A stretch of 45,487 nucleotides of DNA from Hyphochytrium catenoides (lineage: Eukaryota; Protista; Hyphochytriomycota), in NCBI GenBank assembly GCA_900088475.1, contig FLMG01000322.1, positions 1 to 45,487 of the forward strand. The letters run 5' to 3'. The notes under the pieces are model-generated. The model worked only from the letters and a program-made list of their open reading frames with translations. It ran no database searches and had not been told where the DNA came from. The position numbers and the translations under genes were made by a program. Shown in pieces: positions 2,494 through 41,381 of the stretch (position 1 is the stretch's first letter; every line of letters starts with the position of its first letter).

Positions 2494-4664
2494 TCAAGAG
2501 CGATGTGTGCCGTGTCTGCTCATGTGATCATGAGGGAAAGGCAGTTGTGCTGGGCCTGGGTGAGGGAGAGAGCCCATCCCTGGTGCTCCCGGAGCGCCAG
2601 AAGAAGGCGGAGGAAAGTAATGACGTGGTGCCATTCCTTGGAATTGAGGATTCTGCCCATTGTTTCCAAGCATTGAGTATAGGTCAGCCCATGGAATATC
2701 CTCGTACTGCTGCTGATACGGTGCTGGCCGGTAAGCAAGAGATGGGTCGAGGCAGGGCCTTTTGGCTGGAGGCTGAAGAGAAGCGGAGGAGTCTGCCGCT
2801 GCGGCTGCTGCTGCCGCCGCCGCTAGATGCATTGATGCTCCAACCCGACTGTGGACAAACAGAGGAGACAAAGGAAATTAGAAGGTCAAACTAACTGGGC
2901 ATTGACACCGAAAAGAAGAGGCCTAAGGCCAGACTGGTCTAGAAAAAGGTTAAAAAAAGAAAGAGAGAGAGAGAGAGAAAGAGAGAGAAAGAGGGATGAC
3001 TTACTCTTTTTGCTGGTGAAAGCTTGCCCTTCTACTGGAAAAGATAGAGAAAGGGTCGGATCTCAGTATGTGCACACAGGTATTGTTGTCATCCGCTTGC
3101 GGTTGGAAGAAAACGACCTCAAATCTATGATAAATATCTTGTCCATGTTGCCCCTGGCCTCTAGGAGCTGACCAGCCGTAGTGCCAAGCTTTGCAGTCTC
3201 CGTTGAATTCAAAGACAGCGGTCTGCATACCACCAGCTGCAGCTATTGAAAGTTGCTGAAAAGAGACACAGACAAGAAGAGAGCGTAAGCATTGGGAAGG
3301 CAAAGTGGTGAAGAAAGCATGTGGGCTAATACCTTCACTTGGCCCTCAATCCAGGGTCTCTGAGGGTGGTCCTTGTCTCTCTTTAAGTTCTGAATCTCCT
3401 GAGTAGTCATCTTGCTTCCTACTCGGATGTTGGGTCCAGAGGACTTGAGAATGTCCTCGTTCATGGTAGCAGGATCCATTGGGAAGACGCGACCATAGGC
3501 AAAGAGGCCGAACTTGGGCTTTTCTGCAGGACGTAGAACGAGCACATAGGAGGAGAGGGGACAGTCAATAAGCACGTACTCCCAGAAGACAAAGAGAGAT
3601 AACGAATGGTCTTACCGCCAGGATTATAGGACGGCGTGCTATTGCTTGAGTCCATGAAGGAGGTGTGGACCTTTATGGAATCTCCACAGAAGCCAGAAGA
3701 GAAGTGGACGCCATTTCTACAGCTTGGGAAGCAGCGAAGGTTCTTATGACCTCCCTTCTTGTTATTCCGCTGATACTTGGGAGCAAACATTCTCATTCCT
3801 TCTCTTGGGGCGATGAAGTTTGCTTGCACATGCAGACCGCCGTGTTGAGACGACGAACCCGATGAATGTGCAACTGCAGATGAAGATGAAGCTCCAGATG
3901 GAGCTCCGGGTCTTTCTGCGTGGTCATCTACACCACTGACATGCGGGTTGTGCACGAATCTTTGTGTTGAGCCGTCCATGGGGTCGACAAATAAGGCGTT
4001 AACTGGCTCGAACTGATAGCCGATAGGCTCTACCAGGAAAGAGTCCCTTAGGGCGAGCAGTTTAGAGAAGCGGGTGTCTTCTGGTTGGTTGAACATATCC
4101 ATGAGCTTGGAGCGCGATGGGTGCTTCATCTGTAAATGAGACAGAGAGGACACGAAAGAAGAGAGAGAGAGAGAGAAGACAAGGATGTCAGAGACACAGA
4201 AACGAGAGAGGGAGAAAGGTAGCGAGTGAGATACCTACCACGGATGTATAGACGTTAGATCCTTCTGGGGGACGAACAACGGTAAGGCAATCGTATCCTG
4301 AAACTTCCTGAGCCTCGTGAGCCACAGCCTGAATGCACTCTTCGAACTGTGGAACAGAGTCTTCTTTCACTTTCATCACACTGACCATTATCACGTCGCT
4401 GCCAGCGGAAGGAGAGTCTGGAGAGGAGGAAGAAGAGAGAGAAGGACCAAGGGCCGGCGCTGAAGAAGAAGAGACAGATTGTCGCTTGGCCTTAAGAGCT
4501 GAAAGAGAGCTGGCTGCAGCTTCTTCTGGCGAGAGAGAGAGAAAAGAAGATGCTGAGTGCGGAGAAGAGAGAGAGGAAGAGGGTGATCCTTCGTCTTCTT
4601 GCGCTCGAAGATCGCTGCGAATTGGTCGAGTCTCCGTTGTCCTTGCCGTGGCTTTTCTTAGCAT
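2494..4664 (-). CDS. Uncharacterised protein, paralog A: ABM-like domain + conserved KNLRCFP/Cys-His domain + low-complexity tail (putative transcription factor). Exons 4664-4239, 4129-3616, 3523-3333, 3255-3005, 2848-2494
   Basis: Five exons join in frame with canonical GT-AG sites (phases 0,1,0,2). Colinear and homologous with the gene at 38836-41381. Start codon uncertain; a 5' exon is possible. Confidence refers to gene existence; function is inferred. Confidence 0.85.
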
Positions 4665-5279
4665 GAGCAAGTCATCGCTAGGCGGTGCTCTTTGGCAATG
4701 CGTCTATTTCTCAAGTGCGTTCTTTCTCTCTGAGCGACGGTGAGGCGCGCAAGAGAGAGAGAGAGAGAGAGAGAAAGAAAGAGAGAGAGGGATGGGAGGT
4801 GTGAGGTCCACCCTGACGATTTGAAACTAAGCTTCAATCCTCAGATCGGAAGCCGTTTCAAGAACGGTCTATCCACCATTAAGCTTTTCTGAGGATGCGG
4901 AAGACAGACTGATGGCAGGTCTCCAGAAGAGAGAGACGGTAGTGGAAAGAGAGCGAGAGCGAATATAGAAGACCAGTGAGAAAGGAAGTCAAGAGAGAGA
5001 GAGAGCAAGAGAGGGAGAGAGAGGGAGAGAAGAGAAGAGAAGAGAACAGAAGCAGAGCTGTGAGCTGGATGAAGAAAGACCCAAGAACTTCAGTGAGGTT
5101 GGCTTGGGTTCGGCCACTGAGTTTGAGTTGAGAAGGCAGTGTCTGCTTTGCTTCAAAGAATAAAGAGCAGGGCCAGATCCAGAGCCCCGTATAGACCAGA
5201 AGACAGAGAGAGAAGAGAGTGAGAAGGGAGCTGGATGTCACCACGACAGTGCTAAAGGAAGCAAATGTTCAAGACGAAA

Positions 5280-5327
<48 letters not shown>

Positions 5328-5368
5328 AGAGAAGAGAGAGAAGAGAGAGAGAGAGAGAGAAGAGAGAT
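5280..5368. repeat. (GA)n microsatellite
   Basis: Direct inspection. Confidence 0.95.
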
Positions 5369-5599
5369 CTCCATGTGTGAAGCTGCTATTTTCCTCTCGT
5401 GGTACCGCCTGTCTTCTTAGGTCATTCTCTTCCTTTCCAAAATCCCATTCGAAGGTGCCAAGATGCTCCATAGACTCTCTCTCTCTCTCGCTCTCTCTCT
5501 CTCTTTCTCTCTCCAAGCTCAACCACAGTCGTGAAGGCTAGTCCTAGTACATTAACTATGCGCCTTTTGTGTTCAGCTGTCAGTCTGCATGGCTAGTAT

Positions 5600-38835: not shown

Positions 38836-41381
38836 TCAGAAGAACTCCAATTGTCCTGGAGTGTGGACGATGCTATTGGCCATTGCTTGTGAGGTTGCGA
38901 TATGTGAAGGAAGAAGGTCCACAGATTGTTGCAGTCCCCCGTCTGTTGGGAGAGGAGGTATAGAGAACATGGAATAGAGATCCACCCATGGAATATCTGT
39001 AGGAGTGATCGTGCTGATGTTCGCCCTCTTTCTCTTCAAGAATGGCTCATCAGGCGGGGGAGGCGATGAAGGAAGAAGGTCCAAGTCCACATCTTCCACC
39101 CCTCCAGACGCACTACATCAGAGGCAAATTGGTGATAAGCGAGTTAACCTCGTGAAGGACTGCAGGGCAGGATACAGACTAAAGAGGCGCGCGCGCGAGA
39201 GATAGAACGCTAGAGCGAGGAAAAGAGAGAGACTGAAAGAGAAAGGGAGCGAGAGATCCTGAGGGAAAAAAGAAGAAGAGAGCGAGAGAGAGAGAGGAGA
39301 GAGAGCGAGACTGGCCGGCTTGCACAATATTTGGGGAAGTGAAAATATAAGCACTGCTTCTGTGAACAGATAAAGGGCAGATGAGCGCCACAAGGGGTAG
39401 AACGCAGGGCTTACTCTGAGGCTGCTGAGCTTCCTGGAGGCTTCCTACTGGAGCCAATAGAGAATGGGTCTGACTGTAGAACGTATACGCAGTACAGCTT
39501 CTTCCTGAATGGCTTGAAGAAAAGGGCCTCAAAACAATGAAGAGGATCGTTGCCTTGCTGTCCCTGTCCTCGGGGTGCCGCCCAGCCATAATGCCAGGCC
39601 TTAAAATCACCGTTGAACTCAAAAATCGCTGCCTGGAGGGCGCCATCTCCTGAAGCTCCCTAAGCATCAAGCGGGCATGAGTAGGCTGGTTCACCTCTAA
39701 GTATTCAACCTCTATCTTTCTTCCTGACATACCGCACAAGGGATATCTCTTATCATAAACGTTCTTGCCTAACGACCGCCTTATCAAGCAATATGGCCCA
39801 TCGCCTTCTTTTTAATTTTAAGCTATCATTTACCTTGAAGACGCCTGGCACCCATGGTCTCTGAGGGTGGTCGCGATCCCTGACGAGCTTATCAATCTCT
39901 TCGACTTCAAAAGTATCTCCCACGCTAACTAACGGGCCTGAGGACTCTAGGGTCTCCTCGTCTAAAACTCCGGCCTCATAAGGAATGAACCGCGCATAAG
40001 CTAGCGTACGGTTGGACTTCGATGATCGCAGGCCGCAGACACGGATACCTATCATAGAGATACTGTGATTCAGTGGAGAAGGAAATCTGCCGAATGATGA
40101 GGTTCAGGAAAACTTATGTTGCTATAGAGGGTAACACCACAAAAGTACCAGTCATCACCCAGGCGGAGGGTGTAGCGTGACCAATGAGATAGAGAGGAAA
40201 AGAGCTGAATACCTCCTGTAGATGTCACTCTGCTGATCGACACATGCACTTTGATAGAGTCCCCGCAGAAGCCTGAACTGACGTGCACGCCGTTTCTACA
40301 GTCAGGAAAGCATCGAAGATTCTTGTGTCCTCCTTTTTTGCTATTCCGCAGATAGCGCGACTTGAAGAGTGGCCCTCCCCTCATAGAGACAAATGCAGCT
40401 TCCACTTGCAACCCGTTCGGATTGTAGCACGAGTCATTATAGCAAAGCTCTGCGTCTGACTCTGGAGGACCTGACGTGTCAACCACTTCCACCTCTCTTT
40501 GACTTGTGAAGAGTTCTTGGATCTTGCCAGAGGTCGGCTCTATTGTGACAGCATTGCCCTCTTCAAACTGATATGTAGGGGGTGAGATCAGGAGAGAGTC
40601 TCGTGTTGAAAGAAGCTTTGTGAACTCAGGGTTTTCCTGAGAGCCGAAGAGTCTGACAAGTTCTGATCTCGACCTGTGATGGATCTATGCAAAGAAGAGG
40701 GATGAGAACGTAGGAGGCGCTAAGCCAAAGGCAAACACGTAGGAAACGATCGTGAGAAGAAAAGAGAAGAGACATCGAATCGAAGGAGAGCTCAATAGTG
40801 CTACAGGCCTACTAAGACTAGCGAGATAACGGCAGACGGAGCGTTGAGACACGTTGAAAGGATGGGGATGCTTTTCGGGTAAGTGGTAGCGCAGAGGAAA
40901 CAGCCATGGTGACACCTCCCTCCAAGGCATCTCATGCTGGAGAATCAAGTTGATAGTGTTATCCTACCACGAGAAGGTAGAGGTCTGATCCTGGGTATGG
41001 AAGGACAAGTGTAACCGCGTCGACTGAAAGCGTCTTATTAACCACAGCCATCATATTCTTCAAGCACTTCTCCAACTCCAGCTTGCAGTTATCCTTTGCC
41101 TTCAAGACCATAGTCATTACCACCTAGGTCCAAACGCATCGGAAAAGGTTAGCCACGAGCATAACACCGCAGATCCCCACCCTGTGCCGTTGCCTTACCT
41201 TGCCATCCTTCTCTCCAAAGTGGTCAATGACGCGCCTTGTATTACCCTTCGTCTCTAGCGGGTTGAGCCTTCCAAGAATTCGCTCTTCCTCCTGTAGGGA
41301 GTTTGCAAACTCGAGCCCCTTGATCATCTCATCAATATTATCTAAGTTGCTCTCCAACTTCACTCCATTCAGACTATTCAT
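38836..41381 (-). CDS. Uncharacterised protein, paralog B of the 2494-4664 gene (ABM-like + KNLRCFP/Cys-His domain). Exons 41381-41199, 41123-40968, 40684-40213, 40048-39834, 39659-39415, 39112-38836
   Basis: Six exons join in frame. Contains YLRNSKKGGHKNLRCFPDCRNGVHVSSGFCGDSIKVH, RDRDHPQRPW, FEFNGDFKAWHYGWAAPRGQGQQG, SDPFSI and DIPWVDLYSM, all matching paralog A. Exon 5 is in a frame not shown in the ORF track. Confidence 0.87.

Follow-up and report, generated by a model that had tools for sequence, protein, structure and literature searches.

Immunoglobulin (Ig)-like beta sandwiches serve as DNA-binding domains in the velvet, NF-κB/Rel, STAT, CSL, T-box, NDT80/MYRF, COE and p53 families of transcription factors. 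In the fungal velvet regulators, the domain carries the C-terminal motif F-x-V-F-S-A-K-K, and in p53 a Cys3-His zinc site holds the DNA-contact loops. COE factors have a zinc knuckle of the form H-x3-C-x2-C-x5-C. The transcription factors of oomycetes, labyrinthulomycetes and dinoflagellates are mostly known from families common to plants and animals. A literature search for velvet-like, Rel-like or p53-like factors of oomycetes, stramenopiles and dinoflagellates found none, and its matches to "velvet" were assembler or fungal papers. In the velvet protein VosA, loop A, which lies between strands 1 and 2 and contains K37, K39, R41 and K42, is needed for DNA binding in EMSA, and the velvet domain ends in a helix (PMC3876986); the word "zinc" is absent from the text of that paper.

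Here we describe a gene on the minus strand of a 45,487-nucleotide stretch of Hyphochytrium catenoides DNA (the window), which we consider rather likely to encode the zinc-stabilised Ig-fold DNA-binding domain of a nuclear transcription factor. The gene (gene A) and a second gene of the same layout (paralog B) have the following features, all on the minus strand.

2494–4664, minus strand: gene A coding region, five exons and four introns, predicted from the sequence
4664–4239, 4129–3616, 3523–3333, 3255–3005 and 2848–2494, minus strand: gene A exons 1 to 5
3995–4397, minus strand: ABM-fold (ferredoxin-like) domain of gene A, N-terminal of the zinc-knuckle domain and split by the intron 4238–4130
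3616–3838, minus strand: first part of the zinc-knuckle domain, with strand 1, basic hairpin, knuckle and next strand; read from the sequence, with secondary structure from an ortholog model
3775–3734, minus strand: basic hairpin Y-Q-R-N-N-K-K-G-G-H-K-N-L-R
3733 (C), 3721 (C), 3706 (H) and 3688 (C), minus strand: candidate ligands of the knuckle C-x3-C-x4-H-x5-C
3333–3523, minus strand: middle part of the domain, equal to exon 3, with R-D-K-D-H-P-Q-R-P-W
3022–3255, minus strand: last part of the domain (exon 4), starting with F-E-F-N
3186–3172, 3129 and 3078, minus strand: W-H-Y-G-W, a conserved His and a Cys in exon 4
3060–3040 and 3039–3022, minus strand: S-D-P-F-S-I-F and the basic C-terminal helix S-S-R-R-A-S at the end of the domain
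2746–2772, minus strand: NLS-like basic site P-P-A-K-R-P-C-L-D, soon after the domain, read from the sequence
2668–2703, minus strand: conserved C-terminal motif E-D-I-P-W-A-D-L-Y-S-M-L, acidic-hydrophobic and like an activation motif
38836–41381, minus strand: paralog B, 36 kb from gene A
40414–40213, 40048–39834 and 39659–39415, minus strand: domain exons of paralog B

The predicted coding sequence of gene A is 1,737 nt long (578 codons and a stop). All five exons are open in frame and bordered by GT/AG, the intron phases are 0, 1, 0 and 2, and the order and content of the exons are those of the orthologs. An earlier note on this DNA had placed a putative DNA-binding domain at 3005–3800. The feature is real, but its start lies about 40 bases further out, with the first strand running from about 3838. 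The region 3005–3800 consists of three exons and two introns rather than a single reading frame, and sequence searches with gene A were run exon by exon.

All of the strings quoted in the earlier note were found on the minus strand, in exons 2 to 4 of gene A, and are common to gene A and paralog B. Recounting in the alignment gave the same identities between the two genes, 33 of 37 residues for the knuckle string and 21 of 24 for the string running from F-E-F-N to W-H-Y-G-W, and the C-x3-C-x4-H-x5-C spacing had been read correctly. Over the whole exon ending in the knuckle, the paralogs are 48–49% identical, and their intron phases are the same. When the three domain exons were compared with the window by tblastn, the E values were 1.5e-39, 1.8e-16 (exon 3) and 3.1e-26 (exon 4), so at the sequence level the likeness of the two genes is far beyond chance. 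The Cys of N-G-D-C-K-A-W, considered as an extra ligand, was rejected because paralog B has a Phe at this position.

The domain belongs to a family for which we count 505 representative proteins (clusters at 50% identity, E ≤ 1e-3), an upper estimate because at least one match is spurious, namely the HYR/SRCR-domain protein P0142, which matches only a low-complexity linker of the profile. Oomycetes, labyrinthulomycetes and a single dinoflagellate account for all of the named members, every one of them annotated "hypothetical"; the family is also present in marine metatranscriptomes, and hundreds of relatives come from transcriptomes. One MMETSP record bears a taxon number, probably truncated, that resolves to a fungus, and it contributed no taxon to this range. 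The earlier note had pointed to similar motifs in uncharacterised oomycete proteins, and the family is indeed present in eight oomycete genera (Phytophthora, Plasmopara, Pythium, Lagenidium, Aphanomyces, Saprolegnia, Achlya and Thraustotheca). The note had described the domain as lineage-specific, but its occurrence in labyrinthulomycetes, in one record from a dinoflagellate and in metatranscriptomes of marine origin extends it beyond a single lineage. The domain is about 190–230 residues long (about 190 in gene A), and in one relative (P0009) the whole of it lies in a single uninterrupted open reading frame.

The Cys/His set that the earlier note had called invariant is near-invariant across the family. 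The matches listed centre on the knuckle, and C-F-P-x-C...H...C occurs in 147 of the 150 among them, with two of the three exceptions carrying His for the second Cys. Across 196 sequences, the first Cys is present in all and the second in 194, the remaining two having His. The pattern C-x3-C-x(2-5)-H-x(4-7)-C fits 193 of these sequences and H-x5-C is found in 189; the distance from the second Cys to the His is x4 in 137 sequences, x3 in 47 and x5 in 5. Four conserved candidate ligands with short, near-fixed spacing (C-x3-C-x(3-5)-H-x5-C in 189/196) thus fit a Cys-Cys-His-Cys zinc knuckle. In a 104-row alignment, conservation reaches 99% at the knuckle His and 100% at the last Cys. Within the hairpin and knuckle region, the R, both outer Cys, the P and the G are 100% conserved, and the Y, N, N, K, R, second Cys and His 96–99%, so that the basic hairpin Y-Q-R-N-N-K-x-G-G-x-K-N-L-R is near-invariant. 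The region of exon 3 is the most variable part of the domain, and exon 4, which is 62% identical to that of the Phytophthora ortholog, contains further well-kept positions (W 95%, Y 95%, H 96% and F 92%). In the family consensus, the domain ends in F-x-I-F-S-R-R-R, like the velvet motif; the counterpart in gene A is F-S-I-F-S-S-R-R.

The domain is strongly basic, with a median pI of 9.38 across the family (above 8 in 97%) and a net charge of +9, of which +6 lies within the 35 residues of the hairpin and knuckle. In 119 of 196 members its core begins no later than residue 40, and Pfam searches of 69 full-length members detected no other recurring domain. A transposase or viral DNA-binding domain was rejected as an explanation, no such Pfam domain being present in those 69 proteins.

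Gene A and its orthologs represent a subfamily in which an ABM-fold domain precedes the zinc-knuckle domain and an NLS-like site and an acidic-hydrophobic C-terminal motif follow it. ABM domains are usually dimers and often bind small molecules. The Pfam ABM model (PF03992) scores 14.4 bits on the gene A exon (E 0.044), under its cut-off of 23.1. This exon is 35% identical to residues 36–86 of the Phytophthora ortholog P0004, and the model of the ortholog's ABM region shows the order beta-alpha-beta-beta-alpha-alpha-beta. Its superposition on SnoaB 3kg0 gives a TM by target of 0.86 and an rmsd of 1.7 Å, and it also superposes on LsrG; over SnoaB, LsrG and many other ABM proteins, the TM by target is 0.75–0.87. 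The present case differs from these proteins in its sub-cut-off Pfam score and in being a eukaryotic fusion of the ABM fold with a putative DNA-binding domain. At the relative position of the NLS-like site of gene A, paralog B and the orthologs have K-R-K-R. The C-terminal motif reads D-I-P-W-V-D-L-Y-S-M-F in paralog B; it is kept in the Plasmopara and Lagenidium orthologs and in two relatives from environmental assemblies, with the conserved ortholog form P-W-x-E-L-Y-x-L-F.

To represent the fold of the gene A protein, we used an AlphaFold2 model of the Phytophthora ortholog P0004, computed on the 104-sequence alignment; the ortholog is 44–62% identical to the first and last domain exons of gene A and about 30–40% identical to the middle one. 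The model (pLDDT 87.9, pTM 0.87; local pLDDT 89–93 at residues 41–60) is all-beta with a C-terminal helix, the last elements being strands at 185–213 and a helix at 215–220. His 185 and Cys 201 of the model were considered as a second metal site, which is unlikely because they lie about seven positions apart along a two-strand hairpin, and Cys 201 is only 68% conserved.

Structural searches of the PDB placed the velvet domain first. The top Foldseek match is VosA 4n6q (E 1.1e-3, probability 1.0). A VIA-align search over 48,161 chains returned VeA 9i2s (Z 7.5, 147 residues aligned) and VosA 4n6r_A (Z 7.2, 143 of 151 residues aligned), followed by NF-κB p52 (Z 6.2) and by STAT, RBPJ, TBX5, RelA and TonEBP (5.3–5.8). 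On re-alignment, velvet again came first (Z 7.9, 7.2 and 6.4, the next row dropping to 5.8), with VeA 9i2s at Z 7.5–7.9 over 147–149 residues across the two runs. The velvet scores of Z 7.2–7.9 over 143–149 aligned residues, with about 7% sequence identity, fall in a range where, by the tool's own note, a match may be merely a common arrangement. In the ESM Atlas list, a Velvet cluster (PF11754) ranked second and a MYRF/NDT80 cluster was also returned; an Atlas feature search with the knuckle exon gave a best score of 0.75, which is uninformative. Among solved structures, NF-κB, STAT, CSL, T-box, MYRF and EBF1 come behind velvet.

The earlier note had proposed an Ig fold of the p53-like kind, and comparison of the model with such folds agrees, since the model is confidently all-beta and its best matches are Ig-fold DNA-binding domains of transcription factors, seven such families being among them. 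With the Pfam results and the near-invariant Cys/His set, the computational checks that the note had called for thus support its reading. The model thus shows the domain as an Ig-like beta sandwich of the kind seen in the families named at the outset, and its twisted sandwich and C-terminal helix can be superposed on VosA and VeA, the moderate Z scores denoting a shared fold but not proving descent.

Velvet (VosA, VelB and VeA) also resembles the domain in layout. Each is a twisted sandwich of similar size that ends in a C-terminal helix and has a basic loop behind its first strand, and each is found in regulators with long stretches of further sequence. By the order of elements, the basic hairpin, which together with the knuckle carries the charge of +6, follows strand 1 in the place of loop A of VosA. 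However, velvet is metal-free, whereas the present domain has a Cys-Cys-His-Cys knuckle after its basic hairpin and a longer middle part. The two families also differ in range, velvet being fungal and the zinc-knuckle family occurring in oomycetes, labyrinthulomycetes and a dinoflagellate. The Rel homology domain (NF-κB p50/p52/RelA and NFAT/TonEBP) has a similar sandwich (Z 5.3–6.2, 125–145 residues aligned) and an N-terminal recognition loop with Arg and Lys, and Rel factors are dimeric on DNA. By contrast with Rel (PF00554), the present domain has neither the R-x-x-R-x-R-x-x-C loop nor an IPT/TIG domain nor an RHD/TIG Pfam match, and dimerisation, if any, would come from the sandwich or the ABM domain.

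COE/EBF factors combine an Ig-like DNA-binding fold with a short zinc knuckle (EBF1 3mln, Z 5.1). Their knuckle lies elsewhere in the COE domain, whereas here the ligand order is C-C-H-C, in the form C-x3-C-x3-5-H-x5-C, directly after the N-terminal hairpin, and there is no COE Pfam match. The p53 and NDT80/MYRF domains belong to the broad class of beta-sandwich DNA binders (MYRF, Z 5.0–5.3; an NDT80 cluster in the Atlas list). Two distant loops supply the zinc ligands of p53, whereas here a span of 16 residues contains all four; neither p53 nor NDT80/MYRF gave a Pfam match, and both score lower than velvet in the structural comparisons.

These observations suggest how the domain may work. By its position in the chain, the basic hairpin would come after the first strand and before the next long one (model residues 64–73), and the knuckle directly after it would most likely hold one zinc ion. 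Held in place by the zinc, the hairpin would direct its Arg, Asn and Lys side chains into a DNA groove, at a place that, by the order of elements, corresponds to the contact site of velvet loop A and of the NF-κB recognition loop. The basic C-terminal helix (S-R-R-R) could make extra backbone contacts. The ABM-fold domain may provide dimerisation and perhaps ligand control, because ABM domains are usually dimers and often ligand binders. As read from their composition, the NLS-like site would serve nuclear import and E-D-I-P-W-A-D-L-Y-S-M-L would act in activation. For the gene A protein we infer that it binds zinc and DNA, dimerises, enters the nucleus and activates transcription, and its relatives probably form a large family of gene regulators that has so far gone unrecognised.

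Whether the likeness to velvet reflects descent bears on the origin of the family. A true, very diverged velvet member that gained a zinc knuckle in loop A would explain why velvet is the top match in every PDB search and is covered over its whole domain, why the Atlas returned a cluster with PF11754, and why both domains have a basic loop after strand 1 and pass from a hydrophobic strand into a basic helix at their end. Against such descent, the Velvet model (PF11754) had no match in the window exons, the orthologs or the full-length members, and none of the 104 domain segments reaches it even at E ≤ 10; the structural alignments retain only about 7% identity, and velvet is without a zinc site. 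We regard descent from velvet as doubtful; were it true, velvet-type factors would be older than fungi. It is a refinement of the transcription-factor reading rather than a competitor to it.

Alternatively, the domain could be an Ig-like module that holds zinc but does something else, such as binding RNA, a protein partner or a small ligand, for instance to regulate or target the ABM domain; its likeness to velvet and Rel would then reduce to a common sandwich. Consistent with this, all Z scores are below 8, and the Ig-like domains of MtrC, CrdA, complement MG and glycosidases reach 5–5.8, level with Rel, STAT and T-box. No Pfam model matched the zinc-knuckle domain in the gene A exons, 10 orthologs, the 69 full-length members or the 104 domain segments, the RHD and all other DNA-binding Pfam families lacked any HMM-level link to the 104 members at E ≤ 10, and neither single exons nor the family profile matched PDB sequences; the domain is thus without a sequence link to any DNA-binding family. 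Nor was there a match to a Pfam family of other function, which the earlier note had named as something that would speak against its reading. ABM domains are often enzymes, as judged from the structure matches, and an invariant basic loop could also suit RNA or another partner. However, velvet led all three PDB searches and ranked second in the Atlas, is covered near end to end (143/151) and scores 1.4–2 Z units above the generic rows. The charge of this strongly basic domain is concentrated in the invariant hairpin, most members carry just this domain at the N-terminus and share no further Pfam domain, an arrangement typical of transcription factors, and NLS-like and activation-like motifs follow the domain in the ABM-fused subfamily. 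We therefore judge a role other than DNA binding to be unlikely. That the feature is unreal, arising by chance or from a gene that is dead or wrongly joined, is highly improbable: the exon borders of gene A are a reading from the sequence, but family conservation contradicts this explanation, as do the open exons and shared intron phases of the two paralogs, orthologs in many genomes, hundreds of transcriptome relatives and the relative with an uninterrupted domain.

If the domain is the zinc-stabilised DNA-binding domain that we favour, a velvet/NF-κB-type fold so far tied to fungi and animals would be used by distant eukaryotes, with a zinc knuckle built into its recognition loop. Among the oomycetes, a group with major crop and fish pathogens, are Phytophthora, Plasmopara, Pythium insidiosum, Saprolegnia and Aphanomyces. 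Hundreds of diverged members, with no Pfam model or named member, would then fill part of the gap in known regulators and offer a handle on promoter motifs that lack a factor. More tentatively, the family may be an unrecognised zinc-dependent branch of the velvet/Rel superfamily, with gene A as its founding example, and among the larger transcription factor families of oomycetes, labyrinthulomycetes and perhaps dinoflagellates. In that case, velvet/Rel-type binders would predate the split between opisthokonts and the stramenopile-alveolate lineages, and the ABM-fused subfamily, to which gene A belongs, would combine sensor and regulator in one protein.

The domain lies in gene A, a minus-strand gene modelled on the basis of its open frames, its GT/AG borders and its relatives, and recurs in a second gene of the same layout:

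4664–4239, minus strand, gene A exon 1 (open frame, GT/AG borders, relatives)
4129–3616, minus strand, gene A exon 2 (open frame, GT/AG borders, relatives)
3523–3333, minus strand, gene A exon 3 (open frame, GT/AG borders, relatives)
3255–3005, minus strand, gene A exon 4 (open frame, GT/AG borders, relatives)
2848–2494, minus strand, gene A exon 5 (open frame, GT/AG borders, relatives)
41381–38836, minus strand, paralog B, layout as in gene A

The predicted exons of gene A amount to 1,737 nt of coding sequence (578 codons and a stop). The interval 3005–3800, to which the earlier note had assigned the domain, comprises the end of exon 2 and the whole of exons 3 and 4, with 3005 as the last base of exon 4, and contains all of the peptide strings that it quoted. 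Sequence searches for gene A used single exons as queries; with tblastn against the window, the domain exons matched paralog B with E values of 1.5e-39, 1.8e-16 and 3.1e-26, and the identities previously counted between the copies (33/37 and 21/24) were correct on recounting. Four introns are common to the two genes, with phases 0, 1, 0 and 2 in each, and because these phases are identical, we consider the duplication to be old and the gene model to be coherent.

The window has a G+C content of about 49%, short introns and abundant (CT)n/(GA)n runs. Long runs of this kind take up gene A's introns and flanks (2940–3000, 4150–4200 and 4745–4795) and much of the window (for example, 14–283 and 5238–5522), and account for many spurious entries in the ORF list, with S-L-S-L or R-E-R-E frames. 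The N terminus of gene A (4400–4664) encodes about 90 Ser/Pro/Ala-rich low-complexity residues, whereas the N-terminal exon of paralog B (41381–41197) is different and is accompanied by an extra intron at that end. Gene A also diverges at 3617–3660 (versus 40214–40240) from an otherwise conserved strand region, V-x-V-S-R-x-T-x-S-G-G-V-K-I-C-P, which paralog B and the orthologs retain; either the edge strand is altered, or the chosen donor site at 3615 is not the real one.

The gene A domain exons matched neither Pfam nor PDB sequences, and a word-based search with the exon encoding the Cys-Cys-His-Cys knuckle returned one match, an Aphanomyces euteiches hypothetical protein. A family profile built from the knuckle exon of both paralogs and searched against 1.84 billion cluster representatives identified 505 proteins at E ≤ 1e-3, an upper estimate because one match (P0142) is spurious and aligns only with the low-complexity linker of the profile. 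Nearly all of the matches listed are centred on profile positions 114–165, which cover the knuckle and the basic hairpin preceding it, and all but 3 of the 150 matches listed contain the C-F-P-x-C...H...C pattern, the second Cys being replaced by His in two of these three. The taxonomic range, drawn from the few clusters with names, spans oomycetes (Lagenidium giganteum, Pythium insidiosum, Phytophthora fragariae, P. rubi, P. kernoviae, Plasmopara halstedii, Aphanomyces stellatus, A. euteiches, A. astaci, A. invadans, A. cochlioides, Saprolegnia parasitica, S. diclina, Achlya hypogyna and Thraustotheca clavata), labyrinthulomycetes (Mucochytrium quahogii and Hondaea fermentalgiana) and, by a single Durusdinium trenchii record, dinoflagellates; further members come from MMETSP, TARA and other assemblies of marine or freshwater origin. 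Every named member is annotated as hypothetical or uncharacterised and carries no precomputed Pfam domain. No Pfam family recurred in 69 full-length members or 104 domain segments, even at E ≤ 10, and none of the 69 matched AP2; the family profile matched no PDB sequence, and we found no description of the family in the literature on velvet-, Rel- or p53-like factors in oomycetes, stramenopiles and dinoflagellates.

Adjacent gene pairs in several genomes (SPRG_07148/07149, SDRG_00553/00554 and Aste57867_16244/16245) suggest that the family has grown by tandem duplication; the two copies in the window are 36 kb apart. In an uncultured relative (P0009; ENA metagenome scaffold KOPF15-1 scaffold_598, L001:2698-3951), the entire sandwich domain is a single uninterrupted ORF, neighboured by genes for WD40, 6PF2K/His_Phos_1 and Surp/PRP21 splicing-factor proteins; a 96-residue ORF immediately upstream may be the ABM part, that is, the domain N-terminal to the sandwich. 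Residues 1–230 of the Lagenidium giganteum ortholog model (P0002) form an additional N-terminal region with a weak TPR match and a Cys-rich stretch, which may stem from an upstream gene fused into the gene model.

In an alignment of 104 domain segments, the consensus begins with a first strand bearing a terminal Phe, continues through the hairpin and knuckle, Y-Q-R-N-N-K-x-G-G-x-K-N-L-R-C-F-P-x-C-x(3-5)-H-x3-G-F-C-G, and a variable middle, and ends with F-N-x4-G-W-H-Y-G-W, a conserved strand-opening His and S-P-x-F-x-I-F-S-R-R-R. Arg33, Cys45, Pro47, Cys60 and Gly61 (model numbering) are invariant, and Tyr31, Asn34, Asn35, Lys41, Arg44, Phe46, Cys49 and His54 are 96–99% conserved; gene A and paralog B retain every highly conserved hairpin and knuckle residue, with the sole exception of Asn35, replaced by Ser in paralog B. 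Of 196 sequences, 194 have Cys as the second candidate ligand and two have His (P0116 and P0141, with C-F-P-x-H), a swap that would preserve a metal ligand and is of the kind expected at a metal site. The Cys-to-His spacing is four residues in 137 sequences, three in 47 and five in 5, and His-x5-Cys occurs in 189 of the 196; P0201–P0204 have P-C rather than F-C-G around the last ligand. The domains are basic (median pI 9.38, above 8 in 97%), with a median net charge of +9, of which +6 falls within the 35 residues of the hairpin and knuckle.

The fold was modelled by AlphaFold2 with this alignment on residues 167–398 of the Phytophthora fragariae ortholog P0004, rather than on the window's own protein; its identity to gene A is 44% for exon 2 and 62% for exon 4. 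The model (mean pLDDT 87.9, pTM 0.87, five models within about two points) is all-β with a short helix at the end, in agreement with the β-sandwich expected earlier. The related proposal of an Ig-fold DNA-binding domain is supported by Foldseek against the PDB, which ranked VosA first (E 1.1e-3, probability 1.0), with VosA–VelB and VeA, followed by STAT, CP2c/LSF, MYRF and p53. VIA-align, an independent search of 48,161 representative chains, likewise placed VeA (Z 7.5, 147 residues) and VosA (Z 7.2, 143 of its 151 residues) ahead of NF-κB p52 (Z 6.2), Dictyostelium STAT, RBPJ, p65, TBX5, RelA and TonEBP (Z 5.3–5.8) and MYRF (5.0). VIA re-alignment of the Foldseek list gave velvet chains Z scores of 7.9, 7.2 and 6.4 before a fall to 5.8 (EBF1, 5.1), and a shape search of the ESM Atlas returned an oomycete cluster, followed by clusters for Velvet (PF11754) and MYRF/NDT80. 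The predicted domain thus belongs to the Ig-like sandwich class. Its specific nearness to velvet is probable, since velvet headed each of the three PDB searches and came second in the ESM Atlas, with almost the whole velvet domain covered at 1.4–2 Z units above the rest; we grade it no higher because, by the tool's own warning, a Z below 8 can reflect no more than a widespread arrangement, and Ig-like domains of a generic kind reach 5–5.8.

In VosA, mutation of loop A between strands 1 and 2 (K37, K39, R41 and K42) abolishes DNA binding, loop A superposes on the NF-κB p50 recognition loop, and a second basic loop lies just before the C-terminal helix (PMC3876986). The P0004 model runs from its first strand (11–17) through the two short hairpin strands (30–35 and 41–43) and the knuckle (45–60) to the next long strand (64–73). 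From this order of elements, we infer that the invariant hairpin and knuckle would sit where the velvet/Rel DNA-reading loop sits. The main rival to a DNA-reading factor, a zinc-holding Ig-like module that binds RNA or protein, appears less likely.

The proposed mode of action resembles that of velvet and Rel domains, but the family has no Pfam match to them, no R-x-x-R-x-R-x-x-C loop and no IPT/TIG domain, its taxonomic range is different, and velvet lacks a metal site such as the candidate Cys-Cys-His-Cys site. That the family is nonetheless a true, diverged velvet relative, which would refine the DNA-binding reading, is possible, although we would not expect it. A putative Ig-like DNA binder with a candidate zinc knuckle recalls COE/EBF, whose knuckle differs in ligand order and position, and a zinc that would hold contact loops recalls p53, whose ligands come from two distant loops. 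Since velvet/Rel features are lacking and these zinc sites differ, the family is provisionally classed as a new sequence family among Ig-fold DNA binders. An artefact is essentially excluded.

A second model (P0004 residues 20–398, pLDDT 82.6) contains a β-α-β-β-α-α-β domain N-terminal to the sandwich, which superposes over 100 columns on SnoaB (rmsd 1.7 Å, TM by target 0.86) and also on LsrG and about forty other ABM proteins (E < 1e-3). Gene A is 35% identical to P0004 in this part, and its exon matches Pfam ABM weakly (E 0.044). In the wider family, 119 of 196 proteins have a domain core that begins no later than residue 40, and Pfam detected no second known domain recurring among 69 full-length members. 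After the sandwich, P-P-A-K-R-P-C-L-D in gene A and K-R-K-R in paralog B and orthologs are candidate nuclear localization signals, and the motif [DE]-[ILV]-P-W-x-[DE]-[LM]-Y-x-[LMF]-[FL] near the C terminus of all of them is a candidate acidic-hydrophobic activation motif of the W-x-x-L-F type.

On balance, we lean towards a nuclear factor with a velvet-like sandwich, at one end of which a basic hairpin braced by zinc would read DNA. The factor would probably be a dimer, held together either by the sandwich, as velvet is, or by the ABM domain, ABM proteins usually being dimeric; the ABM domain may couple its activity to a small molecule.
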